Of a stretch of 64,000 nt of DNA, positions 317 to 30,537 are shown in pieces; position 1 is the stretch's first letter, and the number at the start of each line of letters is the position of its first letter. The notes under the pieces were generated by a model. That model worked only from the letters and a program-made list of their open reading frames with translations, had not been told where the DNA came from and ran no database searches. The stretch spans positions 310,001 to 374,000 of the forward strand of contig NW_020845694.1 of the NCBI RefSeq assembly GCF_003704095.1, in the 5' to 3' direction. The translations under genes and the position numbers were made by a program. The stretch is from Pocillopora damicornis. Its lineage: Eukaryota.

Positions 317-3300
317 CTCTTCGACGGCTGCCTGGTGTCTCTGTTGAGCCACTTGCAAGTCTGCCTTCAACTGCTCCAAGTATCCTTCTAGCTCTCCGAT
401 CTTTAGAGAAGAAAAAAGTGTATAGAAAGATATTAAGTGAGAGTTAAAAGTTTTCCAAAACTCAAAGGAAGCTTCTCATAAACGTGGCAAAACCAAGACA
501 GTAATGGCTTGCGATGCAGCAAAGCGCTCTTAGATTACGAATCGCAAAATCAGAACCATTGCAGTCACAAAGGCCAACCCGAACAAATTGAGAACTCTAA
601 ATAAAAACAAGTTAACCGTCTCTAACGCGGGGAAACACGTATGACCATGACGCGATTGGTTTTACCTTTGGATCTGATTGGTTGAGAGCTTAATGCCAGC
701 TTTCTACATGCACCAATTACAGAATGCAATGATGGAAAGACACTGCAGTACCGGATTACTTTTGACATTCAGTTGAAATTTGGTTTATGAAGAACGCTAA
801 CTTATCGTGGGAACAACAGTAGGTCTCAAGATTGCACGAAAAATAGATCTCAGATAGGAATAAATGAAAGAACTCAAAGTTCCTCTGACAGCCTAAAATC
901 ATGGGAGAAGAGTTAAATTTTAACCGCCAATTTAAGTCTACACGTAGCTCCAGACATATACATTATATAGACAAACAAAATGACGTTAAAAAAATACCTG
1001 TCTGTTTTGTACTTCTTGTTGATCATTGGTGCTCTTCAACTCCAATTGCAATCTACGATTTGATTTCTCTAGTCTGACAACCTATATTAAAAAGACAAAT
1101 ATTAATGCACTATCTCGTCATCAATCTGTTTCAGTTCTGTCCATTCAGGCATCAACAATTTCGCAATAAGTCAATTGGTGGTTCCTGACCTCCGACACTC
1201 GGGCACTCAGCTGGTCCTGGGTAGAAGACAAACTCTGCTCCACCAGACCCAGTCTCTCTTCACAACGAGCAAACTGAGGGGAAAATAACAGATGACACTA
1301 AAGACATACAAAAAAACCCCCAAAGAATTGCTAAGTTCTTGCTCCTTCTTTATAGACTTGGTTCAGAAAAAGGTAATCAGAAAATATTCGCAAGGAATTT
1401 TCTACAGTAGGTAATCTAACGTAAGAACAAAAACAGTAAGGTTGGTATTCCTATGTAACCATCAGTTTGAAACCAAAGCTGTACTAACTTCTTGTGCAGC
1501 ATCTCGATGCTTTTGGCGAGTGTTTGATAAGTCTTCTTCCAACTGAATAACTCTAGCACGCTGCTTAGAGCCCTTTGAATAAGATAAAAACAAGCATACA
1601 ATAAGACGAATATTCTAGATCATTCGTTCTGTGGGGTCAGGAAAATTTAGGACCAGATATCATTTTGGTACAAACCTCTTCTTCTAAATGGTTACAGTTC
1701 GTCTGAAAGATGTTAATCTGGTCGTTCATCTCAGCTGCTGCCTGTTCCAAACTGAATATCTAGCGGGGAAGAAAGGGAAAAAAGAGAAAAACTGAATTAG
1801 GGTTTGAAGATAGAAAATATGCAAATAGGGAGAGCGTTTTTTCCGTAGGATGCAAAGAAAACCAAACATGTGTCATCGTTACTCCCAAGTCTGAGGTTCG
1901 GTTCCCTATACATATGGGAACTCAATTTTGTTTCTCTGTTCCTCGCTTGTAACGAGACGAAGAAAACATCCCACTTTATACGCAATCATCGTTTGGCTAC
2001 CTCATTTTCCTTCTCACGTAGTTCCTGGTCACGTGTTGATAACGTGGTCTGAGTGGCCGTTAGCTTGCCGTTCAACTGAGCGACCTAGAGACGAGACAAA
2101 GAGAAAGGAATCATTCATTCTTGTCCAAAACTAGCTGAACAAAGTTGATGTTCCAGCCTTCCAACAGAAGTGAAAATCAACACATCTCACCTCCTCAGCA
2201 TAGCTTTTCACTGTTTCTTGAAGGTTGGATAGGTCTCCCTCTAGTCGCCTTACAATTTCATCCTTTTTCGCCGTCTTCACAGAAAACATAAAACAATTGA
2301 TTCAGGCTAAGTTGCTCGATGTGAAATTAAGAGATAAATCGCGCAGGTTCATTTTACTTAAGCTATTTCCAAAATTTGAGCAAACTTTACCGTTATTGAG
2401 GAGTGTAGGGAATAGTTTCCAAATCATATTCATCTATTAGTGGCGATAAAATCGATAAAGCTTTTTACAGAAAGAGGACTTGCTGATGAGAAGTGTAATG
2501 TGGAGAAGCCTCCAGACGCACCGAAACACCAAAGGCTGGTGACTGAGGCTAAAGTGGAATATTTATACTTTCTTTGACTAAGGATCTCGCTAAGACTTGT
2601 GAGATGTTTCCACCAAAAATTCGAAGAAAAACTTGACAAGAAAAAAAAACTTGCTGGTTCAAACTAAAAGCCTTTGGTTGAACCATTGCAACAGTTGTGT
2701 TCGTACCTCGTTTCTGCTCTTTTGTTTCAAGTTGGTGACCTCCTTCTGTAGCTGTTGACTGAGCTGCTCACTGCGCGTTACCTGTAAATAAGGAATAATA
2801 AATGAAGCTACGATTCGTTTTTGTCTCACCAGGAGGTAATCTTTTTAACAAAAAAAAATTAAAGGTACTCGTTCCATATAATTTCTGTCAACTTTGAAAC
2901 GTTAAAAGGTATCTTTTACGAGCAGCAAATACTGCAAATTAACGGTCACCTAAAAGTCAAATTTTGAGACGAAACCGTTGATACCGTAGACTGTCTCAGT
3001 TTCTGAAGCGAATCCGACTTTTGCTATGGCAGGTTCTTAGTGGGTGGAAACGGTCAAGAAATTGGGCGCGCGGAAAACGGCAGGAGCCGTTTTCCTGACA
3101 ACGAGAACGACCGTTTGACACACGGCCTCACTTTCATTTCTCTCTAATACTCGAGAGCCTGGAAAAAGCTAATGTCAGCCCCAGTCCATCACTTTCATTC
3201 CTCTCTAGTACCTAAGAGCCTGGAAAAAGCTAATATCAGCCCCAGTCCATCACTTTCATTCCTCTGTAATACCTGAGAGCCTGGAAAAAGCTAATATTAG

Positions 3301-6300
3301 CCCCAGTCCATCGATGATTACCTCGGCGTTCATCGAGCATCCTATTGCACTTACGGAGATAAGTAAAATAAACAATTCGTTACCTGTATTGACGCTTGCC
3401 TTCTGTCCTCCTTGACTCTGCCTAACTCATCCTCTACTTCTAGCATTTTCTCTTCATAGTATGTAACCTTGAAGGATCAAACGCAAACAGATAGGTAAGA
3501 GTTTAATGAACGAAGCAGAAATATGTGACAAACTGTTCGCACCATCAGGGCTCTATTTGTGGAGTCACTGTTTCTTCTGCGTAGCGTTCTCAAAAGACCG
3601 AAAAGCACTTGTTACAGCAAGTATGGAGGATTTCCATTAGCAAACTCCTTGGAAAATGCGACGCAATTTGTGTCTAATGGCGTTAAAGTTCTACTACTTA
3701 ATGAATCAATTGCAAAGCGCATGCAAGTGCGCAGAACTGGAAAAATACTTTGTTCTATTTTAACGCAGTAGGAGAGTCGCGTTTATGCCGTTAAGATATG
3801 GGAGATGGTGACACTGTGAAAACTTTGTCAAATCAATCTTGGAAAAGCTATTGAAATGAGTGCACCTTTGGGTCTTTTTTTGATCTAAAGGTAATGCAAA
3901 TGAGGGGCATTTGAGAACAAACCAATAAGATGTGAGGTGGAGGTTTTTCCTATTTTTCTCCTTCGTTTACATTTGAATAAAGTTCACACCTGTTGAACTC
4001 GCTGAGCGTGTTGTTCCTTCTCGGCCAGAATCGCGTTTTGCAGACTTCGAATCTTTTCTTCCTTCAGGGTAATCTGTAACACCAATAAGGAAAATTTGCT
4101 TTTACAAAACGAATCTTAAGATCTCAAGGGATCGAAAGAGATCTACACCAATCCCTGACTGACTTTACCTCTTCCAGCGATTTTTCGTACTTTTCTTTTG
4201 AAGCATTCAAATCTTCTTGCAGATGCCTCGATCTTTCCTCTTGGATAGAGCCCTGAATAATCAAATAAACATCCATTGTGGTTAATTCAAATTTAGTATT
4301 GCATTTTAGGATGTCATCCTCTAATTGATTTGGAATAATGTACACTGACGTAAAGTCTTTGCGAAGAGCCATGAGGATGATTATGACACTAAAGGAGTTT
4401 TGTATCACGCTTTCGCCGCTCGTTTCCCATTGTGACTTTACGCGACAAAGACAACCAGCTGAGCGGAATTAATGTGTAAGGGTGGAGGCTTCTTCTCACC
4501 GCACACGACCCTTTAAATCGATGAGATTCAACAAAAATCATTTTTATGGGTAAATAGTCTCGCACCTTTCTTAACTTTAAAATTTTAGCGGGACTTTAAG
4601 ACATTCGCTTTTGGGTGATGTTCTGCGTAATGTTCTGTTTACCGCGTTGACACAATTAATTGACAATACAAGCTTCTGTACTAGGTTTTGCGTAAAATAA
4701 GTTGAAAACAGCTTTCGAGATGCTTCGAAGAGTATCAAGATACTACAGGTAGGTCGAAAAACTATTTTTTTTCCTTTTTACGCAGTAATTTTTGGGATGC
4801 TTTACTAATTCAAAATCATCCTTACCTCTTTCTGTTTGTCGCCGAGTTTTTGCTTCAAATTGTGAATTGTCTCTTCACAATGGGAAACCTGGAGTGCAGA
4901 GAATTAAGTGTTAGTTTCCAACAAAAACTTTAAAACAATTACTTATTATAACTTTCATTCTGAAGTCCAACAGCTGATTATTACTACTCAACAGAGTAGT
5001 TCGAGCCATTACAGACAATCTTCCACCGCATTTTGTCCTTCCTAACTCACCAGAATTTTCTTGTCTCGCAAGCGCAAAAATGAAGGAACCTGCCTGTCTC
5101 GATTTATCATGTGCAATTTTTCTCGATATTAAGCGTGAAAAGAAAAGTTTAGTTTTGATATAACTTTTCAATGTCTCTTTCTGTTTGACGAGGAAGAGGA
5201 ATGACAAAGAAAATAAAAAAGAGTAAACAAAAATCCTCTTTCGTCGATTGATTGAAATCTGTATAAATTAAGCCTATTGTTGCATAGCAGAGTTGTGATG
5301 GCTATAGGAGCCTTACAAACGAAAATATTAAGAGCTATTTAAAACATAAAAAACTTAAAACTTAAATTTTCCAGTTCGTGCCTGAACACTCAAAAATACC
5401 TGGCTTTTTAATCTGAGGCAGGCGTCTTTTGCCAGATGTAATTCCCTATCAAGCTCTTCCATTGCGTTGTTCTGCTTTTGAGTCTACAAAAAAAATTAAA
5501 GAAAAAAATTTTTTTAAATAACCATTAACAAAAGAGACGAAGTATCTCTCTTTACATGCGAGATTTGAGCAGGTTTCTTTTTAAACTACATATAACTACT
5601 CTATTACAAAGAAAACAGAGTAATAAACAAAATTTTTTCAATAAAAAGAAAGCAATCCGTAAAATGTTTGTCTAAATTATACCTATCAATTTACTTGAGT
5701 TTTTAACGGAGATTTGGCCTCGTGAGGAAAACCGGCAAAGTTTATAAGGATCTCGCTCTTGTATAATAAAACTACACAACACACCGATCAACTTGTACAT
5801 TTGCTATAAGCAACAGGTGATAAATTAAATTGTCGATAAAATCAAACAAAAACATCACCATGTAAATGTGATCAATTAAACCGAATAAAACAATGGCTTA
5901 AAAGCATTTCACTGACAAAGGATTACTCAAAACAAACCAAACATCTTGATTTCAGAACATTACACATAAATCTTTAATTTCTGTTTGACTCGAGGCGACA
6001 TTAGGGTTCAAAATTATTTTCTTGTTTGACACGCGGCTTGTAGTTTACAATATCTTTAATCTTTCTATGCAAGGCCGCTCTTCCGGATTAAAGCAAAATC
6101 AACTTTATGGCTGAGTTGAAAAAAAAGAAAAATTAACACAACCAAAAGCGTTCGTAGAAGAAAGGTGAACTGATCGAGGACTCAGTATGCAGGGGAAAAA
6201 TTAAAATCTCTTCTTTGAAAAAAAAAAAGTGTTAAATCTTCACGCGGTTTTCCTTCGTTTATTTCTTTTCATCCCTTTTTGTTTTGGTTTCAAATTCTCT

Positions 6301-8305
6301 CTGTCTACGAGACTGACATAATGTAAAAAAAGTTTCTCTAAATTATCAGTGCATCCGTAGAATGTCTCGTTTCGGTTACAAAGTCAACTTCAAATGCAAA
6401 TACTTAATTCAAATGGCTTAACCAGATTTGGTATCCCATCACCTTTTCCGTTTCACTCGCATAATTCTGTCTCAGCACTGTCAGCTCTTGAGACTGCTGG
6501 TTTATTTCTTCTTCGCACTTCACCGCCTTGGAGAAGAAAATAAAATGTTTAGCAGTAAGTTTGAAAGAGGAGTGTTGCCTGTCCAGTTTGTTGGCTTAAC
6601 AAAAGTTTTTAGCAAAGCTAAGGAAAATTGCGTTTTAAAAGAAAGTTTTCCTTTCATTAGCATGTAGCAAGGTTATTAAACTTATTATATGCAGAACATC
6701 ATGGGAGCCGTCGATTATGGAAGGATGTATCGTCAGACTCTCTAAGTAAACATCAAAAGATATGGGTGGAAATTAGAAAGTGATAAGGAAAGGAAGGCTT
6801 GATGCTTGAAAAATCAAGTAACAGTATGAAATCCAACAATTCACCTGCTCTTGCGCCTCTTTCAAACTTTTCTCTAAGTTCTTGATCATAGCCTCACATC
6901 GATTGACCTACAAGCAAATGTGACAGACTGAATCAACCCTTTACTCTAAGGAGTGATCCGCACTTAAAAATTCTAACAATTTTAACACTCCGTCGGCCAT
7001 ACCAACAACTGAAGAGAAGAAAATTCGTAGTTAAAGAAATTGTTTTAACACCACGTTCTCAGAACCAGATAACGAATATATGTACCGCAATCAGGAGGGC
7101 GAATTATCCTTCAGATTTGAGAATTTAAAAAGGGTTGGTTAGACAGAAAATAAAAGGCAAAAATAATGCATTACCCAAACACACATTAAAGACATTACCT
7201 GAGTAACACTTTGATTAAACTGGCTTTTATAATAGTTGACGTTTTTCTGTAGTTGATGGCTGTGCGATTCCAGTTCCTTGAGCTTTTCTTTCAGATTTGA
7301 GGCCTAAAATATGAACACGAAGGTTTAACGGTTTGAAATTACAATAAACATTGATGATAAATATCTTGGAATATTTATATTGAACTGCCGAGCAGAATCA
7401 CGGTAATTCATTCACTTGCCTGGTTTCTTGTTTCTGTCATATCTTTTTCTTGACTACGGACAGTTTGCTCTAAACGATTAATCTGCCAGGATAGAATAAA
7501 TTTTCATGGGGTGAAATGTTCAGAAAATCCAAATAAACGTATGATAAATAATATATAAATGAAATAGTAAGCAAATAAATTTTTGTCGTTGGACGAAAAG
7601 ATCAAGACAAACCGGCAGTCTAACAAGAAGTCAGACAGACAAACAGACAGACAGGCAGACAGACAGATAGACAGACAGACAAACAGACAGGCAGACAGCT
7701 AAGGGTGGACAAGGAGGTGAGCATATATATATTTACAGTATGCAAAAACGACGGACTCGATTAGTATTCTTGTTTAGTATATACCACACAGGTGAATGGT
7801 GCTTTTCGAGCGTTGATTGGCCAGTTCGGAAGTGAATAGCAAGTACTATTCACCTCCGAGCGGCCGATGAGACAAAACCCCCGCGCGTCAAGAGTTTTAG
7901 TTTTCGACTACTTTTCGGTATATTGAAAGAAATAAACTAATTTTTTGTATCTATGTAGTATATACTAACACAATTATTCACCTCACTGTTGTTGAAAGTG
8001 ATGGATATTCACCTCGCCGCCTGAATAATTTTTAAGTAGATTTGCCCGACCAGCCTCGTCAGTATGACTTAGGAACAATTAAACCTTAACTCAAAGATGA
8101 GGCTCGTTAGGCCAATCTACATGAGTACAAAAGAATACCAATCGGGCCTGCCATTTATGCACACTGTCTATAGAAGCAGATGCGAGTAAACGGGAAAAGG
8201 TAGACAAAGAGATAAGTAGGTCTATATAAGGATGTACAGACCGGTATAAAGCCACGAGGAAGCTAGCCAGCCAGCGAACCATAAAGACAGACAGACAGAC
8301 AGACT

Positions 8306-8355
<50 letters not shown>

Positions 8356-11300
8356 AAGATGAACAGACTGTAAGTCTTGTCTTACCTCTTCAAGTGCTTC
8401 CTCGTTCAGTTTTAGGTTGTGTTGCAGCTCACGGGTCAGTTTATTATTTTTCTCGCGTTCTTCTTGGAGCTAAAACAATATCAGTATAACATTAACACGT
8501 TATAAAACAATACCATTTTTAATCCATCGCATTACTACTTGCAGAAATGCAATTCCCTATGGTTAATCAGAGAGACTTTTCAGTTCATTTTGAAACTCAA
8601 TTTTGGTGGCTCTGCGATACTCTGCCGGGCGGTTATATAAAGACATCCCCCCTAAGAAGTCAAGACTAATGATTCTTTTGCTTAGGACATGGGCTTTTTC
8701 TTGAGATATCCCTCGACTTCATTAACTTCATGGATAATTCGCTGACCTCCATTTCAAAGGGCATTCCCGATGCACTTTCTGAAAGATTCGGCACCTCAAG
8801 AACAAAGCGAGCTCATAACTGGTCAACCCATGGTCCGACGCGATCAGTCTGTCGCCAACGTTCAGGTCTCGAGCTAGACCTATCATAAGTATCTTTCTAG
8901 TCGAAGTAGTTTGATTGTCGTAGAGACTCACCTGGTTAGCGGTATCATTTTCTTTCTGCATTACTTCAGTAAGGTTAGCCCCCAGTGTTTCAATCTCTGC
9001 ATTAAGCCGTTTAATCTGTAATCAAATATAATGGATGCTTCAATCACTTTTGCAACCTGAAGCCATTCAAAAACGGACGTGAGAGAAAAAGGCGTAAATG
9101 GGGAACCCAGTGTCTGGCTCGACCTCTCTAAAAGGGACCGACACCCGGTTCTCGTGAAGCATAAAGGAAGATTACCTCCGATGAATGTCCTGCCTCTGTG
9201 TCTGTCATGGTTCCTTCTAAATGCTCAACAGTCTGCATAAGTTGTTGGACCTGATAACAAAGTTGATTTGAAAAGATAAGAAATGTTAATAGAATAAGAA
9301 AGATTGTAAGAGAGATTTTAAGTAAGAAAAAATTCCGAGTCCCCATGAGACACGTGTCATATATGAACTTCGTAATGGCCTCGCTCACCATGGAGTCCCT
9401 GTGGCTAAGCGGTAGAGCATCCGAGCGCGAAATTTTGATTCCTCGTGGGGACTCAGAATTTTTTTCTTTGTCCCGCTCTCGTGACAAGACGAAATACATC
9501 TCTCTTTAAGATAAATGTTATTTCTAATGTTAACCACTGTTCACTATTCTACAAGTATCATCGTAAACAAAACCAGATGACGTCTCCTAAAAAAGTAAAG
9601 CTTAATGCGCTAAACTAACCTCGTGCATCAGTCGTACTTTGTCTGTCTTCAATTGTTGTATTTCCTTATCATCACATGCGATCTGCGAAGAAACAAAATG
9701 GTTTTATACGATCGAAATCCCCAAAAGAACAATCTTATCAAGGGATGGCTTTCTCATTCACGCGTAATCGGTGAGGTTCGGTTGGAATCATTGTTGAGGA
9801 TTTACGCTTGTGACTAGTGTCTACATGTTTCCTTTTGTGTCCGCACCTTGTTCTCGTCACTTTCACGTTGCGTTTTGAGCGACTCGACCTCTACTTCCAG
9901 TTTGTTGAGTTTTCCTCTCAAGTCTTTTACTTCTCGTTCTCTCTCTGACAACTCACTGCTACAAGTCTCGTATTCCTGCTGAGTGGCGTCCAGTTCAGAC
10001 TGCAGGCTCAGGATTGTCTCATCGCGTTTCGCCACCTACAGGATGAATCCAATTTACAAGTTAGTAGTTGTGTTTATGTCACATTAAAACTGTGATATAT
10101 GAACGGATTGTATTGCTGTTGAATAAATCCGAGGTTCCATGGATACAAATATCCATCGCTTTGGACGAAAATGGGAAGGAGCTTATCAGAAATTGTTATA
10201 AAAGCAAGCGAACTACTTGAATCGCGAGAAAATACAGGCTATAGTGACCAATGGCGTTTGGTTTTCGTATTGGACTTGAGTGGATGGAGAGAAGCGAGTT
10301 TTCTAAACCAATCACAGAACAAAGAAGAGAAAAACTAATGAAATCTCAGACTGTTTTGCACCCAAAAACATAGAAACTAGAATCGGAGCCTCAACTTAGC
10401 ATACATTTCGCTCACTGAAGCTGTTTGATACATCTATCAATTCAACTGTTCCTTTAGATTATTGAATCACAGAAATTATCCATAAAAGGCTCATTTGCTT
10501 ATTTTTTTACCTCCTGTGTACATGTGCGGTGTTTTTCCTGTGACATGGCAAGCTCCATTTCCATTTTGCGAATAGTTTCTTCCGATTCTGCCACCTGAGG
10601 AGAGAAAAAAAACCTTAATGACTTCCAACAGTTTTGCATATTATGGAGGTGGGAGGGGAAAAAACACCACCTAAAAAGCCTACTTTTCGTGCACCTCGCT
10701 CCCACAATTCCGCGCGCTGACACCAATTTCTCTTCAGAATTTTTTTACTCGCGAACAGACTTCGCCGATAAGGAGAGACTGCTCAAAGTATACATTCCAG
10801 GAGTTCGGGCCCACGGAGCCAACGAGTTATTTGGCTCTCCAGATTCCAGATGTAACCAGTATGTAAGGTTTTGAAGAAAGAAACTTGTCAGGGAAACTAT
10901 GAGTATATTTTAGCGAGAAAACTTTTCAAGGATGACTTGCGGTGTAAACGCGGCTTATATAAGAGGTTACACCAAATTGTTTGCACTGGATACCTCATCA
11001 TTCGACCTTGACACATCTTCTTGTAGTGACGTTATCTCATCACGTAATTTTGCCATGAGTTCCTCTTGCCGAACAAGCTACAAAAGAGAAATATAAAATC
11101 GTTAGTGTTTTTTTCTCACCGTAAAAAAGAAGATAGTTTATAAAATATAAAACGAATATTTTCTTTTTCAAAATTTCGAGCAGGACTGCATGGGTTAAAA
11201 AAGGCTCTGTGTTTGAAAACTACATATTGATACTGAAGACACGCGAGTTGAAAATTCAAAAGAACTATATATAAAATTACAACACGTTATGCATACACTA

Positions 11301-17300: not shown

Positions 17301-20300
17301 GAAGTCTCTCAACAGCTCGTTCGTGCTCTCGAACCTAAAAAAGACATTCAAAGCAATTAATTGGAAATTCTTCGACCATAGATGATGTTAAATAATATTA
17401 AATATCGCGGTAAAATGGACAAGAAAACCAGTTAGCCTTTTGAGAGGCCTCCTTGAGAGTGATAACAAACTGTAAATATCGGGCGTGCAGATTTTCCGGA
17501 AAGGTTAAAGATCACTAAAAGAGTAAAAAAGGAAATCCACTAACAGTTCACTAATGGTCACAAATAGGACTATATTTCGCTTAAGACACCAAAATATTAC
17601 TCTTAGTTTATTTCTTGTCTCCGTATCGAGGCCGTCGCACTTACATTATCTTCAGCCTTTTGCTGTTGTTCCTGAAGAGACAACTTTTCGATCTTAAGCT
17701 TATGTATAGCTTCTTCTCTCTTGGCGACCTGGAAACATAAAATTAACGTTTTCTATGAACGACAGGGGAAGGATTGCGATACATTTTTTTTTAACAAGCT
17801 CCAACAGTACCCCCTCGTTTCTTGCCAATACACTCCTCGTTTGGGAAAATAGAGAAATTATCAACTGAGTGTTGAAAGTGATCCGAGGGTGTTTTAGTTT
17901 TTCTTTTCCTCGCTCTATGATTGGCCCAGAAAACTCACTCCACTCTCTTAACCAATCAGATGCAAAACTGAAACCAATCACGACTTGGTCACCCGCGTTT
18001 TCCCGCGCTTTAGGAATTTTGGTTGTTTTACTTTGAGGTTTGACTGGCTCTTTAAGCTATTTTCCTTTCTTCCGATTGGTTGCTGTGATAACTGTGGTTT
18101 TAGTTTGGCGAATTTCAATTGAAAAGTGCTCTAAAAAATAGCATGCCCCACCATTTCGACTCCTTGCGTGCCTTTTAACCCTTTTCTCCCTAACATCAGT
18201 ATGCATATTCTCCATACTGTTCTCTACACATTTCCTGAAGTGTAGACAAGGAGAATTTGTTTAAAAATCAAGAGCTTTATAAGTTGGTGATCATTTCCCT
18301 GATTCTCGTGACCTTAATGTTTGATTCAGGGGTGATATTGTAAGAGAAATTAGAGGCTGGGCACTCTGCACACTGGGTTAAAGAATTAATACACGTCCCA
18401 CGAGGCAACAATGGAAACTGAATAAACAATAAGGTTGTCATGACAAGATTTAAACGAACCTCTTCTGCCAACACGTCTTGCTCGCTCTGGGTAGAGATCT
18501 TGTAAGCTTGAATTTTAGCTTCGAGTCTTCCTTTCTGCAATAGAACACACCATGGACGTTACCGTTTGTTCAAGTTAAACAAGTCCGAGATCCTTGCAAG
18601 CTGTATGCTGAGCATTTATGACGGCCTTGATAACAGTTCTAGTTACCTCTTCAATCGCATCCTTCAGCTGTTTCCTGCTGCCCTCCAGATCTCCCTCTAA
18701 CTGCTGAATGGTGTCGTCACGTCTCGTGATCTATAATTAAAAAGGGTTACACTGTACTAAAACGAGTGCAAGGGTATTACTACAGGGGTAGGGTGGAAAT
18801 TCCTAAGACTGCCACCCCCCCACCCCTTTTTTGTGGGGTAGAGATGTTGATTCACGATAATACAACAGCCTGCCGTACCCCCAAAGATGCCGATGATAGT
18901 CTACTGAAGGAACCGATTTGGTACATTGATAAATTACTTACGGTCTCCATTCTCGATTGAGGCATCTGTAAACTTTTAAGATTTGGCCAACAGAAAACAA
19001 ATTTAAGTAAAAATATTCTTACGTCATCAAGTGCTCTTCGATGGTTTTCTTGCGCTGTTAGAAGCTCCAGTTCAAGCTTTTGAATGGCTTTTTCGCGTCG
19101 AGACACCTAACATTAAAAGAAACGAAGATATATTACGTAACAAGTCACACGCATACTATGACATGCACCGAGCAAGAGTAACTCTCCATTAGAGCAAACG
19201 AACTGACAAGAAAGTAAATCCATCCAGGAATTACAACACGTATTAAAACTTACCTCGTCTACAAAATCTTTTTGCTGCACTTGAAGTCTTTGTAAAGCCT
19301 CTTCCCTGTGGGAGACCTGCATTGCGCGAAAATGCCAAAATTAGGAGAGGGAAACAATTAACGGGCTTGATTTGCTTTTTATCTGTTTTGTCTTGGTGGA
19401 AAAGAAAAGCGAATAGCAATTCACACTTGCAATTACAACTCTGAGTTGAAACCAGTGACAGCTGAAGGAATTCTCTTAACTGACTTTGCTCGTCACGATA
19501 TTGAAAATGAACCCTTTGCACCTTGACATCCTTATCAATGTTCTCCATACCGTTCACTATACATTTTCTTTGGTGCTGACGAGGAGAATTTGATTAACAA
19601 TCAAGAGCTTCTTTACTTAGTGCACATTTCCTTTATTCTCACAACCTTAATGTTTTATTTAGGTATTATAATGAAAGGAGAAATTAGATGCTGGTCACTC
19701 TGAGAGGTCAAAGAGTTAATAGCTCGCAGCATCGATTTGTACCTTGGACTGAGCTTGTTCATGCTGATCTTTTAAGTTTGAGAGAGCCATCTTAAGTTCC
19801 CGCAATTCTATATCTTTGTCGTCCACCTAAAAGATAAAAAGTACGTTGAATTAAGAAATAGAAATACTCGGTATAAGGTTCAAGAGAGAAGTTTTTAGAA
19901 AACGTAGGATTAAATGATATATTTAAATGAATCCAGCACCTACCATTTTCCCGAGATGATCAGACTTTTCTAGGCTGCTTTTTTGACTCCTCTCCAACCG
20001 ATTTTCCAGGTCAGATAACTGCAATATAGGACCACAACATCATTAAGTATTAACGAATAAAGAAGTCTCTCAATTTACCAATCGGGTGTTCAAGAACGAA
20101 CTTTTACAATGGCCTTATTATGAAACTTTTATTGCCGATTAATTTGTTTACAGCGACGAGTTATCATGATTAGGAAATTCGACGGGCATAGCTAAGCCTT
20201 TAAGTGATGTGTCTGAAGTTTCTCGAACGGCCAATCACTACATGGTCTTCTTGATAAACTCTTTACACTGACGGTGAGCTTTTTGAAATTTAAAGATCCA

Positions 20301-23300
20301 CGACATAGGAAAATTTCGTTCGCTTTCTTGCCAAAATTTCATTTTACAGTTCTCCTAAAAAAACTACCCTTCCCCAGTTTACAAGAACTGACGACTCGAT
20401 TGTTATCCCAGCGATGCATCAATAGCACGGATTTATTTGTTTACAATCGAGGATAGTTCCAAGTCAATGAGCGACAACCCCACCCTACCCGGCATAGGTA
20501 AAAATGTATTTCTTCTCTCCTCAGTCCTCTATCGCTTTAGCTACAAGTATGGATATTCAACATGGCAGCCAGCCAGCCTCGATCGTGGAAATCCTGCATT
20601 TCCTTCATCACTTACCCTTTTATTAGCAACATTTAGTTTACTTTCCAGCTCTGCCTGTTTACGACTGTAGTCTTCGATCTACAAAAATACAGTAAATACA
20701 ATATTGCAAACAGCGCAAATGACATGTAAACATTTTTCCAAAGTTCTAGGAAACTGTGTATGCAAATATCTTGCTCAAAAGCAAATATCACATTAATTTT
20801 TATTACAAAATCGTTACAGATTCCGTTGTCTTGAAACGGAATTTTTTTAAACGATCAGACAATATCAAGAAAGGTGACAAACACGTAAATGTATGCAGTA
20901 TTTCTATGAATTACAACCATGTACTTACGAGAAAACATCGCAACCAGATCGCACAAAAAATTGCAAACACGCAATGAAAAACGCAAGAACTACTTTTATA
21001 AAACATTTAACTGAATCAACCATTGTACCTTACTTGAGAGAACTAGGAAAATAAAAGGCGATAAGAACTCACCGAGTCTGTCATCTCTTTGTTTTGAGTT
21101 CGGAGCTTTGAAATCACATTATTCCGATGTGAAAGCTGTAGAGACAAAAGTATGTAGTTTTCTAGAGCTGTGCATTACTTAAAGCTTCTCTAGAGAAGTT
21201 TAACTAGAAACGCAAGAAAGCAACAAGCAGGGCTGGATAACAGCACAAACAACAAAGGCATACTTCAATGAAACATCTGTTTTATAAAGGCCGCGAGGAA
21301 TTCGTGTTAAATAAAGCTAACAAATATCACAAACGACATGTTAAGAGACGATGAGCAAATACCTTAAGCACTATATTACATTATATGAACACTGAAGACA
21401 CTGATAAGTTAATTTTTGATCGGGGCTACTCTTAAAATATAAGTTTGTTTACACTTCGATTCGGGCTTCACAAAGTCGCCGGTTGGGCAAAAGTTTTTGA
21501 AAACAATCGCAAATTCGCGCCTTAAGCACAGTACCTTTCATACAGTCGGTCAGACACTTCATTAAACCAGGCCAAAACGTCACAAGTTTCAAGTAAGGTC
21601 TTACAGAATCTCGAGGCAAAAGGAATCGAAATTCTGCACGAAAGCCCTCGCTGATTGCTCTCCGTAGCAAGGGACGCTAACTTTTCACACAACCGAAACA
21701 AATTTATGCAGTATGACCAATTTCAATTGATCTCTAACAAAGCAACGCCAACTGAACAATGAAGCTTTTGTTCAAGATCACACACTCATGCAAGCTTTGA
21801 AAACATGTTGAGGTTCTATCGAGTACAAGAAAACAAAGCAAATTCATCGCTACAATAAATCCAGCGAAGAAATACGAAAACAATTGCCGCTTGTTATACA
21901 GTATGATCTCTACAGAGCATTAAACTCTTTGCTTCCTTTTCCGCGCAAAGTGAAGGAAGTAACATAAACATTTCTGAAGAAGTCCACGAAAGAAATCGAA
22001 AGACATAGAAAAAAAATGTTGACATAGGATATAAAGAAAAAGAAAGAGAATAAAGTTTTACGCCTTTCCAGAAAATAAACAAGAAAGGTGAAAACAAATT
22101 AAGGTGTTAAAATAAACATAGATAGCATACTTTTTGTTCACTACTCAAGAATCATCTGCTCCATGAGAGTATATGCCTTTTGGATTTATTTTTTGCCGAG
22201 ATACTAAACTCTGAGCCAGAGTTAGCAGCTTTAAAAAAATGGCTTGATTCAATGTCATCACGAATGCAAAACAAATTCAAGACTTACCTGAGCGACTGCT
22301 TCTCTGTGTTTATTATCCAAAGCAGAAAGTTCCGTCTTTAACGTTAAAATGGTATCATGGCGCTCGGCCACCTGAAACAACAACGTGATTGGTTACTTTG
22401 ACAACCTACATCACCGTCAGTCCCTTGCAATAAATTAAGCCGATAATTTTCAAGCTTGTAATAATTTTGAAATTCCTATTTATCTTCACCATCCTGATAT
22501 ATGCTCCCTCACTTTCCATTTTTCTAATAAACGATTATCTTCAAAAAATTCACTCTATTTAACGGTCACTCTCTCTAACGCATTGGTACTAAAATCTGTC
22601 AGACGGAGAATATCGTCTTTGGTAAAAGATGAGCCCAGGGTATTGAGGTATAGTTTCACTAAAATCACCCTGGCCACGAAGCAAGCTCAGATTCGAATTA
22701 TGACAGTAGTCACTGATTATTTCCCTTGACAAGACACTGTTATCTCTCAGAGATCCTCTCACCACCGAGAACTACATAATATTGGTACCAGCAAACTTAA
22801 GAAATTACGGAAGGGTCTCCTGTGGGGAACTGCCACCCCGACCAGAATAAGCAGTTATACTCCTTCTCACACACACAATGCACTGAAAACTAGAGTAAAC
22901 CGGATACAAATGAGTCTCAACCCTTGAAAGACTTGACTCACTAGTCGTCATTTCCAACTTACCTCATTTGCTAGTGCGTCTCTCTGATCATTAGAAGCCA
23001 CCTGCAGTCGTTTTATCTCTCTCTGGGCCGCTCTGGATTCCTCTTCTGAACGTGCAACTTGCTCGCGACACTTCACAACATCTCCTTCCAGTTGCTGAAT
23101 GTGAAATTTATTCTTCTCCAGCTGAGATAAAATAAATTAGCAAATAACTTTCACCCTCATTTCCAGCTTTCGATTTGGCTTTACATTTTTGTCGCATGCG
23201 CTAAGCGAGCCCCGGAAGATATTTTCCATACCTTCCGAGGGACATTCCAACGCCCGCTAAAATTCATCTTACATCAAAATAAAATATTTTACCTCGTAAG

Positions 23301-26300
23301 TGCAGTTGTCAAGCTGCGATTTAAGCTCCCGGATCTCTTTTTCATACTGTTGGATCTGAAAATTAAATGAAAGCACACAAACTTTGCTCGTCGTCATCAA
23401 CAACGATTGAATGAGAACAAAAAGCCAACGAAGTGATGAAATACTTTTCATCAAATCCTTTGCAAGTATGCAAAAAAAATACAGTCACGAAAACAAGGAG
23501 AAACGCGCCATGTAAGACGACACGTTAAAAACACTTGTTGCACTCATAGACAGTCAGTTCACATCAGAGGTCAAACGTCTCAAAGACAAACGGAATCTTC
23601 CATCCTTTCCTGCTCGCCCGACATGCTTTCACCACTAACCTCCTTAATAGCAGCATTATATCGGTCTTTCATATTGTCAAGCTCGGAATCCCTTGAAGTC
23701 AGCTGAAACAAAAGAAGCTAGTAAGCGAATAATATAATTTCACAATTAGATACGTCGTTAGAAGTTTAAGCGAAGCAATGCAAAAAGCAAGGGAGCAAAT
23801 TTTACGCGCACATTGCGCTCAAACTGGCGGATCTCATTACGTGCATTTTATGCGCGCGCAGTGTTGCAACACGATCGGCCAGTACTGAAAATTCGACTGC
23901 GTCAGTGAATTTTTCTTAACTCCTCTCTCACACACAAAATTATTTTGTTCGGGAAATGAGCCTGCGCTCCTTGAGAGGGGGACAAAGATCGAACTCAAGA
24001 GAGCAACGAATTTCATTCAGCGTTCAACTTCTGTGCATGCGCGGACGTTGTAGTGGTTAGGGGCGTAATTCCAGGCCGGCCAAGTTGTCCAACAGGAATT
24101 AAATACAACTACGCAAGCCAGTAAGTCACAGAGTGTCAACAGCGTATAACTTTTTTTAAAAGCTCAAAAAACAAAATGGTAAATTGACAGGATACCCATA
24201 ATCAAACAAGCGTTGCGTTCGAACAGTTTCAATTTTCCCTCTTACTTTTGTTTCCTTTTACAGATTTCTACGAACGTTTTCATTTTTTACCCGTATTTTG
24301 TGTGACGGCAGCTGTTTCTTACTATGTTTTTCGAAGAAATTTTGAGCGCGCGCGACCGGCCAGAATTGATCCCCTCGCGCATGCCCAACGTTTGACCGCT
24401 ATGTTACGAAAATTACTGCTAACCTCGCTGACCAACACTTCTTTGTGTCCCTTGGCAGCATGCTGACTTTCGCTCAGTTGACTTTGTAGTTTGATCACTT
24501 CCTGGGCAGCTTTACGTCGCTGATCTTCAGCCACTTCCAATTCAGCCTCCAGTCGCTTAACTCGTTGTTCAAACTCCCGGGACAGATCCAATGGAATGCC
24601 TCCTTCTGAGTCTTTTAATGCCTGGACTTGTGTTTTAAGTTCACGGTTTTCTTCTTCGAGTCTTGCAACCTGTTCAATGGACACCATAATAAAATATTTC
24701 TCTAGTTCCAATAGTCTTTGGTTGTCAAGCTTGAATTTGATGAGAAAAATGTCCTTGAGCTTCAATCAAATTCNNNNNNNNNNNNNNNNNNNNNNNNNNN
24801 NNNNNNNNNNNNNNNNNNNNNNNNNNNNNNNNNNNNNNNNNNNNNNNNNNNNNNNNNNNNNNNNNNNNNNNNNTTTTCAACTACTCGTTTCAATAGTGTT
24901 CTTAGCTGCGAGGATCTCTTAATTTCATTCTTCACCGCAGTGCAAATATATGAATTTCATATATCTAAAATCATCATCTAAGAACTATTTTAAATAACCA
25001 ATAAGTTACAAGTTCTCAAAAGCCAGTGCCAGGCTCTCTCGGTTAGTGGAAATGAGCAAAAGATAAAAAAAAAAAATCAAAGTGCAGCCGTTTCGCTGAC
25101 AACCACAACCGCAGTTTGTCGCTCGCCAAGTCTTTGGCATGTCTTCCTAGACTGAGAGCCCGAAACAGGCCATGTTTTTCAATTTAATGAAACCTACCTT
25201 TACTTTATTGCCAACCTGCTGCTGTTCCAATACCCTCAAAGACTGATCTTTAGCAGCAACGTCTGAACGTTTTAGAGCCTGTTCATCCTGTAGTTTACCA
25301 ATCTGTCCCTGTAGGCGCGCTATAGACAGCTCACACTCTCTTAACTCTCTAGTCGTACTTTGCTGCTGTTTTCTCGAGTGCTCCAGGTCGTTCTTCAGCT
25401 TCCTAATAAGCACGTCTTTCTGAGTCATGCTGCCAGAGCATTCCTCCGCATAAGTATCAAACGACTTCGCATCCCCGGCAAAAGAGCCGACTTTTTCATA
25501 ACCATGAGCATTAGAGTCCACAAGTTCAAGATTGCTCTGAATAAGGAACGAAATAAATGTTAGTTATCTGGATTTAAGTGGGTACCTCCATCGTAATTTA
25601 ATTTGTGGGTAAAACAACAGAGTACACGGCCAATTTTGGAGCAAAATTCTTTGAGGTGGCTCAGTGTCTACTATAAGTAATAAATTTATATAAATAAAGT
25701 CCATTACAGAGACACTAACTAAAGGTCTCTGTTAGTCGGATGGCATCGAAGGTCACCATAGCCATACTTAACAGATTCTTAGAAACGTCCTTAACTATAG
25801 CTTCAGGTACCTGTAACTCAAACAACGAGTTCAATGATCCCCATTTTTTTTCTGCATACAATTCAGACCCCTTAAATTATCAAAAGAACGTCATTTTAAC
25901 TCCACATATTTTCTATTGAGCATAAAAGAAGTATTTTACCTGTTCTTTTCCTTTCAGGTCTTTCTGCAATCTTTGAATCATTTGATCTCTGGCAGCTAAC
26001 TGCTTCTTCAACTCTTGGATGTGTTCTGTGAGTCTTTTTTCTCCTTCTCTCCTGTAAAAATATTGTAAAATTGATCTGACCTGCACTGCTAATCAGAGCA
26101 AAGTAAAATATCACAAGGTGCCAATGAGAACTCAAAGTAATTACATGTGATGGGATGGCTTCAAGCATTGATATACCCACATGAATAAGTGGCAGATGGT
26201 TTACATTGTTTCTGATTGGTAAGATGGTGGAATCTTGAGGTAAGACCATTACAATACCTTATTACTTTGGACACCAGCAGTACAAGAACTAGCTTGCAGG

Positions 26301-30302: not shown

Positions 30303-30537
30303 CAGACCTGACTTTCGATCGCTGAGTTCTGGAGAGGGAATCAAGCGACACCCAGCTGAGTGTTAGCCCAAATGATGTTTCGTGATTATTTGGTCCTTGT
30401 GTACATGTCAAAACTTTCAAAAGGCAGTCGAGCGCTGCAGTAACACAACAAAACAAACCGAACGCGCTTGGGAAAAGGACGCTCGTATCCGGAAGATATG
30501 ATTGGTCGAATTGTTACAACTCATTATTGATGTTTTT

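Follow-up and report, generated by a model that had tools for sequence, protein, structure and literature searches.

A heptad-quantised exon array encoding a predicted coiled-coil rod in the coral Pocillopora damicornis

Introduction

Why should dozens of consecutive exons in a coral gene each encode a whole number of heptads, or a whole number plus four residues? The gene lies on the minus strand of Pocillopora damicornis contig NW_020845694.1, where the window analysed here comprises 64,000 nucleotides (positions 310,001 to 374,000 of the forward strand). An original prediction, made from the sequence alone, described 44 such phase-0 exons encoding a rod of ~1220 residues, and proposed that any exon could be skipped, duplicated or lost with frame and register intact, making the rod a ruler tunable by splicing or evolution.

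Results

Exons were called by a dynamic-programming (DP) finder whose only inputs were frame compatibility, amino-acid log-odds and splice-site weights; every phase was permitted, and exon length carried no prior. The finder returned 42 phase-0 exons on the minus strand between 23702 and 317, and two more were added beyond this set, one (21135-21073) backed by a donor junction in RNA contigs and one (7482-7420) by a GC-AG intron and a 63-nt ortholog in species 2 (Table 1). Together with RNA and ortholog evidence, this reproduces exactly the predicted composition of 26 exons of 84 nt, ten of 63, four of 75 and one each of 96, 105, 159 and 189. The array stands and is longer than predicted: 11 more exons past the window start (84 nt nine times, 168 and 63, all phase 0) bring the whole rod to 1,550 residues in 55 exons. 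Each of the 54 rod introns is in phase 0, and the codon count of every rod exon is 7n or 7n+4; with phase-0 lengths taken as uniform modulo 7 codons, the chance of 55 exons falling in these two classes is ~1e-30, or ~1e-11 for only the 20 that are not 84 nt (the other 35 are).

The gene is present once in the coral genome and runs for ~41 kb, from window position 30328 to ~10.4 kb past the window start. The encoded protein has roughly 2,200 residues, with conserved terminal regions (N-terminal, ~450 residues; C-terminal, ~200-250) on either side of the rod. Its eight N-terminal exons are of mixed phase and without heptad quantisation, the 84-nt exon being the sole exception, and the likely start codon is the ATG at 30302-30300. 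The motif in N-terminal exon 2 has 93 homologous clusters at 45-98% identity, and in the 12 genomic ORFs homologous to N-terminal exon 7 the similarity stops at the donor. For N-terminal exon 3, a later DP run picked a shorter 48-nt version.

Direct transcript evidence came from contigs of three to four RNA studies, which confirmed seven consecutive junctions (17728/18460, 18534/18647, 18730/19023, 19316/19743, 19826/19944, 20018/20616 and 20678/21073). Each joint has CT..AC ends, corresponding to GT..AG on the minus strand, and support from runs X1, X8 and X14, with X7 added for two junctions; in addition, contig pieces at rod exon 3 end at 23121 and 22961. Of the words sampled, the runs contain a fraction of 0.17-0.24; exons make up ~0.18 of 15300-23800. 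This check covered ~5.8 kb (12 exons) in adult-type holobiont libraries, as contigs, which drop rare isoforms; the remaining exons rest on the gene model and cross-species conservation. The coral array is a real, spliced and expressed minus-strand gene. Forty-four of the 55 rod exons end in AG, with GAG outnumbering GAA by 26 to 2 as the last codon, and 23 start with G; the exon-final codon appears to be under splice constraint.

The expectation that exons share a heptad position at their starts was borne out by both the hydrophobicity profile and register tracking, which place residue 1 at heptad position a in 54 of 55 rod exons. Counted from the exon start, the fraction of LIVMFYW residues is 0.82, 0.84, 0.89 and 0.82 at positions 1, 8, 11 and 15, 0.36-0.40 at positions 4, 18 and 22, and 0.2 or less at most others. 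A Viterbi register tracker blind to the exons broke register six times only, with a +4 stutter on each occasion and never more than 12 residues from the end of a 7n+4 exon, of which there are also six; the four-residue excess, read originally as the coiled-coil stutter, is indeed the only source of register breaks. The 28-residue unit is a true repeat, with a column information of 27.9 bits compared with 19.8 +/- 0.5 when heptad order was shuffled within exons (z=16; z=11 for the same shuffle in species 2) and an approximate consensus of V-A-R-R-E-E-x-I-R-x-L-E-x-E-L-S-S-L-Q-E-Q-H-R-E-A-x-E-E. Each repeat has a phase-0 exon to itself, which starts at heptad position a and usually finishes in GAG, CAG or AAG. 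DNA self-comparison detected repeats within introns only and none between exons, indicating that the exon duplication is ancient.

Rod exon 23 (63 residues) was modelled as a parallel in-register dimer with an ipSAE of 0.36, compared with 0.02 for the best control, a mark that 21 of 30 solved homodimers attained, but none of 23 solved single chains. Contacts agreed by at least 96% between runs, partner pLDDT was at least 85, and the i-to-i contacts at 4, 8, 11, 15, 18, 22, 25, 29 onward fall on the a/d positions when numbering starts at exon residue 1. The dimer model may also reflect generic coiled-coil memory. As core positions 4 and 22 are often polar, position 25 is often alanine, and Glu is frequent both at g28 and at e5 of the following exon, a stable simple homodimer along the full rod is uncertain. 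The rod is predicted to be an alpha-helical coiled coil of four-heptad (28-residue) repeats.

Comparison of exon number and length with orthologs, whose gene models are ab initio predictions with a few manual corrections, gave a concordant picture. The species 2 ortholog (loci L006-L010 and L013) has 53 rod exons to the coral's 55, and 51 of the 54 coral intron positions are common to both at 32.9% identity over 1,508 aligned residues. All six stutters are present at fixed positions, there are no intra-exon indels across this alignment, and the only gaps are of 14 residues and of 28 residues (one 84-nt exon). Intron losses are seen directly between the two species, as 159 nt against 84+75 and 147 against 84+63. 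Exon boundaries recur in four other genomes, and coral lengths, including 96 and 189, recur in L012, L014 and L015. In L015, about seven additional exons are predicted at a place where the coral has none; one predicted exon of this lineage, of 24 codons and with a proline, is an exception to the 7n or 7n+4 rule. An ortholog with few introns, L016, whose ORFs measure 532, 388 and 589+ residues, retains long unbroken heptad runs, and nearly all predicted breaks in its coiled-coil stretches are +4 stutters. With 51 of 54 introns and six stutters fixed at 33% identity, the rod is mostly conserved; evolution has altered its length in whole-heptad or whole-exon steps, as in species 2 and L015, without tuning it freely.

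Table 1. Gene features in window coordinates, in transcript order. DP, dynamic-programming model; ortholog, ortholog comparison; RNA, junctions in RNA contigs.
Feature	Length (nt)	Position	Strand	Evidence and remarks
N-terminal exon 1	203	30126..30328	-	DP; homologous first exon in L014; acidic N-terminus
N-terminal exon 2	150	28874..29023	-	DP; strongly conserved 50-residue motif, one genomic copy
N-terminal exon 3	84, phase 0	28072..28155	-	DP; 84-nt counterparts in L011, L014, L015
N-terminal exon 4	132	27474..27605	-	DP; 132-nt counterparts in L005, L015
N-terminal exon 5	74, phase 0/2	26730..26803	-	DP; low confidence
N-terminal exon 6	112, phase 1/0	25940..26051	-	DP; homologous exon in species 2
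N-terminal exon 7	339	25198..25536	-	DP; 12 homologous genomic ORFs
Assembly gap, unfilled	100 N	24774..24873	.	Inside intron between N-terminal exons 7 and 8
N-terminal exon 8	246 (82 codons)	24424..24669	-	Acceptor ttgaacag/GTT; 246 nt also in L015
Rod exon 1	63	23640..23702	-	DP
Rod exon 2	63	23293..23355	-	DP
Rod exon 3	159 (7n+4)	22963..23121	-	DP; two exons (84 and 75) in species 2
Rod exon 4	84	22288..22371	-	DP, ortholog
Rod exon 5	63	21073..21135	-	RNA joint 20678/21073; species 2 ortholog
Rod exon 6	63	20616..20678	-	RNA, both junctions; orthologs in species 2 and 3
Rod exon 7	75 (stutter)	19944..20018	-	RNA, both junctions; 75-nt ortholog
Rod exon 8	84	19743..19826	-	RNA, both junctions
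Rod exon 9	63	19254..19316	-	RNA, acceptor; 63-nt ortholog, 66% identical
Rod exon 10	84	19023..19106	-	RNA, donor; ortholog 60% identical
Rod exon 11	84	18647..18730	-	RNA, both junctions
Rod exon 12	75 (stutter)	18460..18534	-	RNA, both junctions; 75-nt ortholog, 75% identical
Rod exon 13	84	17645..17728	-	RNA, acceptor; ortholog
Rod exon 14	63	17272..17334	-	DP, ortholog
Rod exon 15	84	16716..16799	-	DP, ortholog
Rod exon 16	84	16402..16485	-	DP, ortholog
Rod exon 17	84	15824..15907	-	DP, ortholog
Rod exon 18	84	15603..15686	-	DP, ortholog
Rod exon 19	96 (7n+4, stutter)	15343..15438	-	DP; length shared with species 2, L014, L015
Rod exon 20	84	12857..12940	-	DP, ortholog
Rod exon 21	84	10994..11077	-	DP, ortholog
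Rod exon 22	84	10511..10594	-	DP; ortholog 65% identical
Rod exon 23	189 (9 heptads)	9847..10035	-	DP; length shared with species 2, L014, L015
Rod exon 24	63	9620..9682	-	DP, ortholog
Rod exon 25	75 (stutter)	9176..9250	-	DP, ortholog
Rod exon 26	84	8932..9015	-	DP, ortholog
Rod exon 27	84	8386..8469	-	DP, ortholog
Rod exon 28	63	7420..7482	-	Followed by GC-AG intron (donor gcaagt); 63-nt ortholog
Rod exon 29	105 (5 heptads)	7199..7303	-	DP; 105 nt in species 2
Rod exon 30	63	6845..6907	-	DP, ortholog
Rod exon 31	84	6443..6526	-	DP, ortholog
Rod exon 32	84	5400..5483	-	DP; fused with rod exon 33 in species 2 (147 nt)
Rod exon 33	63	4826..4888	-	DP, ortholog
Rod exon 34	84	4169..4252	-	DP, ortholog
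Rod exon 35	84	3990..4073	-	DP; exon 35 or 36 without counterpart in species 2
Rod exon 36	84	3384..3467	-	DP, ortholog
Rod exon 37	75 (stutter)	2707..2781	-	DP, ortholog
Rod exon 38	84	2191..2274	-	DP, ortholog
Rod exon 39	84	2001..2084	-	DP, ortholog
Rod exon 40	84	1676..1759	-	DP, ortholog
Rod exon 41	84	1489..1572	-	DP, ortholog
Rod exon 42	84	1190..1273	-	DP, ortholog
Rod exon 43	84	998..1081	-	DP, ortholog
Rod exon 44	84	317..400	-	DP; gene extends past the window start
11 more rod exons and C-terminal exons		G000:C2329:299595-309929 (loci L002, L003)	-	DP

Discussion

In this gene the layout of the exons plainly follows that of the protein, and several explanations for it were weighed. 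That the pattern arose in gene prediction, from AG/GT pairs chosen to fit it among the many alternatives available to short exons, has a negligible chance of being correct given that the finder ran without length information, that seven junctions appear in RNA, that identical boundaries occur in four other genomes, and that in-frame stop codons often directly flank the exons. A ruler tunable by splicing, in which symmetric, heptad-sized cassette exons would yield isoform rods differing by whole heptads, is the strongest of the alternatives and is still unlikely. With every rod intron in phase 0, any 7n exon can be skipped or added without changing frame or register, so for these exons the original skipping claim holds by construction from their lengths and phases. 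The same logic of skippable symmetric exons operates in titin PEVK (~28 residues) and nebulin (~35 residues), where one repeat per small symmetric exon permits whole-module changes in length and both proteins have been discussed as springs or rulers. The genes of that pair are documented to undergo extensive differential splicing, which was not seen in the coral contigs: the well-supported joints listed from four RNA runs over ~5.8 kb link only consecutive exons, with no skipping among them, which goes against tuning by splicing, as does the conservation of exon sequence, length and position at 33% identity, as for constitutive exons. PEVK is disordered and nebulin an actin-binding helix; neither is a heptad coiled coil or related in sequence to the coral rod.

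Two explanations concern history. Parallel intron gain would have an intron-poor ancestral rod, like L016, acquire independent insertions at proto-splice sites, (A/C)AG followed by GT, occurring once per repeat unit where Glu or Gln meets Val at the boundary between g and a. The AG endings and initial G of many exons and the few introns of one lineage fit this proposal, but it would take over 50 separate insertions in one gene, all phase 0 and at the same repeat point, before the split of lineages with 51 common intron positions, and duplication of exon plus intron followed by intron loss, which is directly seen, takes far fewer events; we consider parallel gain improbable. Lower still in probability, and already disfavoured, is a purely historical legacy, whereby shared lengths reflect copying of one 84-nt exon without selection on register. 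The exons are homologous repeats, most of them still 84 nt, yet all 20 with altered lengths are 7n or 7n+4, both indels against species 2 are multiples of 7 with none inside exons, the six stutters keep their places, and L016 keeps its heptad runs where introns are few.

Duplication of a four-heptad exon, followed by strong register selection on a parallel coiled-coil rod, is the best reading overall, with a probability of about 0.8. An 84-nt exon would have been duplicated in tandem in the distant past together with its own intron, and selection would afterwards have purged length changes other than whole heptads because the rod needs an unbroken register, the exceptions being the six conserved +4 stutters. 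Exons of 63 and 105 nt would be whole-heptad deletions or insertions, and those of 147, 159, 168 and 189 nt neighbours fused through intron loss, as the comparison between species shows for 159 (84+75) and 147 (84+63).

Fibrillar collagen genes likewise have many small whole-codon exons with lengths that are multiples of a structural repeat, in an array thought to be duplicated from a primordial exon with fusions through intron loss. In collagen the unit is the Gly-X-Y triplet of a triple helix (9 bp; exons of 54, 45, 99 and 108 bp), whereas in the coral it is the heptad of a coiled coil (21 bp; 84, 63, 105, 168 and 189 bp) with an added 7n+4 class, and the two show no sequence relationship. 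Myosin II and paramyosin rods resemble the predicted coral rod in being very long two-stranded coiled coils in which a 28-residue super-repeat overlies the heptad. In myosin genes, exons do not track the 28-residue zones and discontinuities are single skip residues, in contrast to the +4 stutters here; coral exons of 21 and 25 residues break the long-range 28-residue phase, so that only heptad phase is conserved, and the coral exons tested gave no Myosin_tail match. Intermediate-filament coil 2B also carries a conserved +4 (= -3) discontinuity at a fixed rod position, but the coral protein has six stutters, a rod five times longer and a different exon logic, and its exons scored 17.5-18.2 bits against the Filament Pfam model, far under the cut-off of 40.

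In size, and in having end domains that flank a rod, the protein resembles rootletin/CEP250, golgins and centrosomal tethers, although no domain of these long-tether families was recognised in it. The Rootletin domain lies on a different contig. To our knowledge no such exon quantisation has been reported for rootletin/CEP250, golgin or centrosomal genes, and full-text literature searches found no precedent for a heptad-quantised coiled-coil exon array, which is weak evidence. Searches of the protein for Pfam, PDB and named homologs returned none, and we therefore infer its role from architecture and from this likeness in size and layout: most likely it would be a structural tether or spacer, in the manner of long coiled-coil proteins of the cytoskeleton, centrosome or Golgi, with a parallel two-stranded rod of ~230 nm that would fix the distance between the conserved regions at its two ends. 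The quantised exons would then be mainly a preserved trace of the rod's construction and of the constraints on it, rather than a demonstrated splicing device.

Exon architecture of the rod

The minus strand of the window, which belongs to a stony-coral assembly, carries at intervals of a few hundred bases stretches free of stop codons, enriched in Glu, Gln, Lys and Leu and flanked by AG and GT. The gene was modeled with an exon finder based on dynamic programming that combines splice-site weight matrices, amino-acid log-odds and frame compatibility. All three phases were permitted, no exon-length prior was applied, and the finder was started from generic metazoan splice weights and then retrained on its own output. 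Between positions 23702 and 317 it returned 42 exons, all of phase 0/0 and all 84, 63, 75, 96, 105, 159 or 189 nt long, and the two 63-nt exons entered in the table complete the list of 44 given in the original prediction. Of the 55 rod exon donors that were inspected, only that of the intron following the second of these departs from GT.

Extending the identical exon finder 30 kb past the window start yielded 11 further phase-0 exons (nine of 84 nt, one of 168 nt and one of 63 nt) and then mixed-phase C-terminal exons. With these 11 exons added, the array is longer than first described, and the rod, the predicted coiled-coil part of the gene, totals 55 exons and 1,550 residues: 35 exons of 84 nt, 11 of 63 nt, four of 75 nt, and one each of 96, 105, 159, 168 and 189 nt. 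Phase 0 holds for all 55, and their lengths fall into two classes, 49 at multiples of 21 nt (7n codons) and six at 21n+12 nt (7n+4 codons). If phase-0 exon lengths were uniform modulo 7 codons, the chance of obtaining 7n and 7n+4 lengths throughout would be ~1e-30 for the 55 exons, and ~1e-11 under the same model for the 20 exons that are not 84 nt. The eight N-terminal exons act as a control within the same gene: their lengths are irregular and their phases mixed, and heptad quantisation is limited to the rod. The ends of rod exons are under splice constraint, the last two bases being AG in 44 of 55 and GAG outnumbering GAA by 26 to 2.

Features of the locus and neighboring sequence, in window coordinates
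Feature	Position	Strand	Remarks
N-terminal exons 1-8	30328-24424	minus
Assembly gap	24774-24873		100 N, in the intron preceding the 246-nt exon
63-nt rod exon	21135-21073	minus	Donor junction in RNA contigs
63-nt rod exon	7482-7420	minus	GC-AG intron after it
GC-AG intron	7414-7419	minus	Donor gcaagt
Intronic repeats	17795-18379 and 19550-19744		77% alike over 216 nt; also copies at 16131-16335 and past the window start
(GTCT)n-like microsatellite	7605-7700 and 8260-8370		In two introns; spurious long ORFs; reads SVCL repeats on the gene strand, RQTD repeats on the opposite strand
Tandem duplication	3128-3312		Intronic; ~61 nt, ~92% identical
Separate upstream gene	60904-63998	minus	Ankyrin repeats (Ank, E=6e-7); 1,587-nt open exon; 30 kb from the first exon of the coiled-coil gene, no sign of joining seen

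Heptad register and predicted coiled coil

Tallied by position modulo 7, with the first residue of each exon as position 1, LIVMFYW residues have frequencies of 0.72, 0.08, 0.09, 0.49, 0.11, 0.09 and 0.06. Counted from exon residue 1, positions 1, 8, 11 and 15 are strongly hydrophobic in 82%, 84%, 89% and 82% of exons, and at positions 4, 18 and 22 the hydrophobic share is 36-40%. The best a/d register sets heptad position a at residue 1 in 54 of the 55 rod exons, bearing out the proposal that heptad register is tied to exon starts, and all 54 rod introns fall between positions g and a. A Viterbi register tracker that was blind to exon borders, run on the locally joined rod, placed six breaks, and no more, along the 1,550 residues. 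Every one amounts to a four-residue insertion and falls no more than 12 residues from the point where one of the six 7n+4 exons ends. As these exon-blind breaks are all +4 and lie near the ends of the 7n+4 exons, the original reading of those exons as stutters, that is, +4 heptad discontinuities, is correct. The rod follows the canonical heptad pattern, with hydrophobic a and d positions in 3-4 spacing, and breaks it only six times. Counted cumulatively along the rod, the six stutter exons end at residues 95, 190, 320, 513, 706 and 1025, giving spacings of 95, 95, 130, 193, 193 and 319 residues; the repeated values of 95 and 193, the second of which is also kept in the ortholog described below (species 2), might stem from block duplication or from a structural period.

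Modeling of the 63-residue exon (the 189-nt rod exon) in two copies gave a parallel in-register pair with i-to-i contacts at the a and d positions counted from residue 1. This two-copy model had an ipSAE of 0.36 against 0.02 for the best control, agreement between runs of at least 96% of contacts and a partner pLDDT of at least 85; among solved structures, 21 of 30 homodimers and 0 of 23 monomers attained the mark. The prediction supports a putative self-binding of this exon, with the caveat that it may reflect solved coiled coils already known to the model. At the textbook rise of 0.1485 nm per residue, the rod would be ~230 nm long.

Expression and splicing

RNA-seq runs of several studies contain 0.17-0.24 of the words sampled from 15300-23800, in agreement with the exon fraction of ~0.18 in this region. 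Junctions were checked against contigs, rather than reads, of four RNA runs from four studies over 17600-23420 (12 exons). Seven joints (17728|18460, 18534|18647, 18730|19023, 19316|19743, 19826|19944, 20018|20616 and 20678|21073), each found in three or four runs, reproduce the modeled junctions exactly, and all are CT..AC, which is GT..AG on the minus strand. RNA contig pieces also stop at the borders of the 159-nt exon. Every well-supported joint in these 5.8 kb of contig coverage connects consecutive exons (183 weaker joints were recorded besides), and no exon-skipping joint was found among the well-supported joints listed for the 12 exons. RNA contigs stack on the two intronic repeats entered in the table, to a summed depth of up to ~90,000; these are probably abundant, transcribed short transposable elements.

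Conservation of the array in other lineages

Homologs of the 339-nt exon (N-terminal exon 7) and of the 150-nt exon 2 were found as ORFs on genomic contigs of other organisms, with similarity ending at the donor site. A complete ortholog lies on one 1.87-Mb contig (ENA ERZ25066855; loci L006-L010 and L013), here called species 2. As modeled by the exon finder, which supplied all ortholog predictions, its rod has 53 exons, every one of phase 0: 35 of 84 nt, eight of 63 nt, five of 75 nt, and one each of 96, 105, 147, 168 and 189 nt. In a global alignment run locally, the two rods show 32.9% identity over 1,508 residues with their exons in collinear order, and share 51 intron positions (of 54 in the coral and 52 in species 2), with the six stutter exons in identical places and only two gaps, one of 14 residues at the array start and one of 28 residues, or one 84-nt exon. 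The coral 159-nt exon corresponds to 84+75 nt in species 2, where a single 147-nt exon in turn stands for coral exons of 84+63 nt; the unusually long exons thus reflect intron loss that joined neighbors at heptad borders, or intron gain that split them. Exon 2 is 82% identical between the two, and several C-terminal exons are 50-76% identical; from these sequences we infer only that the conserved ends would fit a spacer or tether with binding at its ends.

The same run of lengths, 96- and 189-nt exons included, recurs in three further lineages: L012, the AT-rich L014 and L015 (GCA_949826985.1). L015 has ~7 additional predicted exons where the coral has none, and within this block lies the only exception found to the 7n or 7n+4 rule, a predicted rod exon of 24 codons (7n+3) with a proline inside (L015:12722-12793). 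In a fifth lineage, an intron-poor ortholog (L016:4839-11647) carries the bulk of the rod in a few long ORFs (532, 388 and 589+ residues). Its C-terminal motifs are the conserved ones, and it has long unbroken heptad runs, in which the breaks within coiled-coil stretches are almost only +4 stutters; its predicted long exons of 1596, 315, 264, 1125 and 495 nt are 0 or 12 modulo 21, in a rough model with uncertain borders.

Several exon calls were amended after inspection. Small exons from the finder were swapped for homology-backed versions of 75 or 84 nt in L014 (39 and 36 nt) and species 2 (78 nt), the 48-nt call for coral N-terminal exon 3 was likewise replaced by 84 nt, and a 39-nt predicted exon in L015 was discarded as false. 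A candidate additional coral exon, 105 nt at 12435-12331 (or 12414-12331 if read in a different frame), was not accepted, as its orthologous neighbors adjoin in species 2 with nothing between them. Judging by comparison with L015, the assembly gap appears to conceal no missing coding sequence.

Relation to known coiled-coil families

Sequence searches were conducted exon by exon, the joined rod being used locally for register and for the alignment with species 2. In these searches no exon matched a named protein, a Pfam family or a solved structure. Pfam searches with 20 exon or ORF pieces gave sub-threshold generic coiled-coil matches only, and a PDB sequence search with exon 2 gave no meaningful match. 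An all-library HMMER search with the 339-nt exon returned 12 short genomic ORFs only, a profile search with exon 2 returned 93 ORF fragments without names, for which cluster look-ups gave none either, and the C-terminal part of an L016 ORF used as query returned three proteins without names. ESM Atlas matches to CCDC171, CCDC73, HMMR, CCDC30, CEP250 and SCLT1 were a scatter of unrelated coiled-coil families and were taken as noise.

Membership of a known filament or rod family was weighed against the same data. Rootletin/CEP250 was rejected, as the genomic matches to the N-terminal Rootletin domain (PF15035) were on contigs C3332 and C2698, outside this locus. An intermediate filament identity was likewise set aside, as Filament (PF00038) scored 17.5 and 18.2 bits, far short of the 40-bit cut-off. 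For a rod of the myosin type, Myosin_tail_1 gave no match at E<=1 with exons tested singly, and whereas myosin and paramyosin have +1 skip residues and a kept 28-residue phase, the rod has +4 breaks only and its phase is shifted. Eleven 21-residue exons displace the 28-residue phase, and the long-range phase is destroyed by the 21- and 25-residue exons, leaving the heptad phase alone conserved. Because of this, staggered assembly of the myosin kind, driven by a 28-residue charge period, is unlikely.

Origin of the repeat

The 84-nt exon represents an ancient repeated sequence unit. Beyond the heptad, the 35 28-codon exons have common residues: basic at 3-4, acidic at 5-6, Ile at 8, Leu at 11 and 15, Gln at 19, His at 22, Ala at 25 and acidic or Gln at 27-28. 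Shuffling the four heptads inside each exon lowers column information over the 28 residues from 27.9 bits to 19.8 +/- 0.5 (z=16), and the same test in species 2 gave z=11. A recent duplication of rod exons was rejected, as no exon-to-exon or intron-to-intron DNA similarity was found in the locus, only intronic transposon-like and microsatellite repeats. Exon 2 is present in one copy in the genome.

The simplest account has four parts: duplication, selection on register, heptad deletions and intron losses. A 28-codon exon together with its intron would have been duplicated many times before the coral and the other lineages split. The product would be a continuous parallel coiled coil, in which indels other than whole heptads would be selected against and six stutters retained at fixed sites. 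The 63-nt exons would then have arisen by occasional whole-heptad deletions, and the fused exons by intron losses.

Comparison with modular exon arrays and implications

One module per exon is a classical arrangement, as in collagen (54 bp), titin PEVK (~28 residues) and nebulin (~35 residues). The rod has the exon-sized, symmetric, repeat-multiple architecture of collagen-type arrays, sharing with them whole-codon exons whose lengths are multiples of a structural repeat, but it is without the Gly-X-Y triplet of collagen: Glu, Gln, Lys and Leu are abundant, and Gly and Pro are nearly absent. Like titin PEVK and nebulin, it carries one sequence repeat per symmetric exon. In coiled-coil genes such as those of myosins, intermediate filaments and tropomyosin, exons are not known to follow the heptad, and full-text literature searches turned up no description of an array quantised by heptads. 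The principle of a module per exon is therefore familiar; its application to the heptad, the scale of 55 exons and the deep conservation appear new.

The suggestion that such an array forms a tunable ruler stands in part. Lineages do differ by whole exons, as seen in L015 and species 2, but the array is mostly frozen and no alternative splicing was seen in the contigs covering 12 exons. An improbable but more novel reading makes the rod a genuine gauge of length, its exons being length quanta; whole-heptad exons would be skipped in some tissues or life stages, for example in larvae, gametes, or particular ciliated or stinging cell types, and the resulting rods would vary in length yet stay in register. 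If true, this would be the first splicing-tunable coiled-coil ruler.

The locus is perhaps the clearest example to date of a gene whose structure maps onto that of a coiled coil. It also provides a natural experiment, in that between two orthologs a long coiled coil has tolerated, over ~1,500 residues, only indels that are multiples of seven, the kept discontinuities are +4 stutters at fixed sites only, and the layout has held down to 33% identity. The architecture could guide the design of length-adjustable coiled-coil spacers. It raises testable questions as to how important rod length and stutter placement are in a long tether, whether only whole-heptad changes are tolerated, and what role this widespread protein plays. 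In total, these findings extend to the heptad the principle known from collagen, PEVK and nebulin, that rods grow by duplication of an exon that is also a structural unit.
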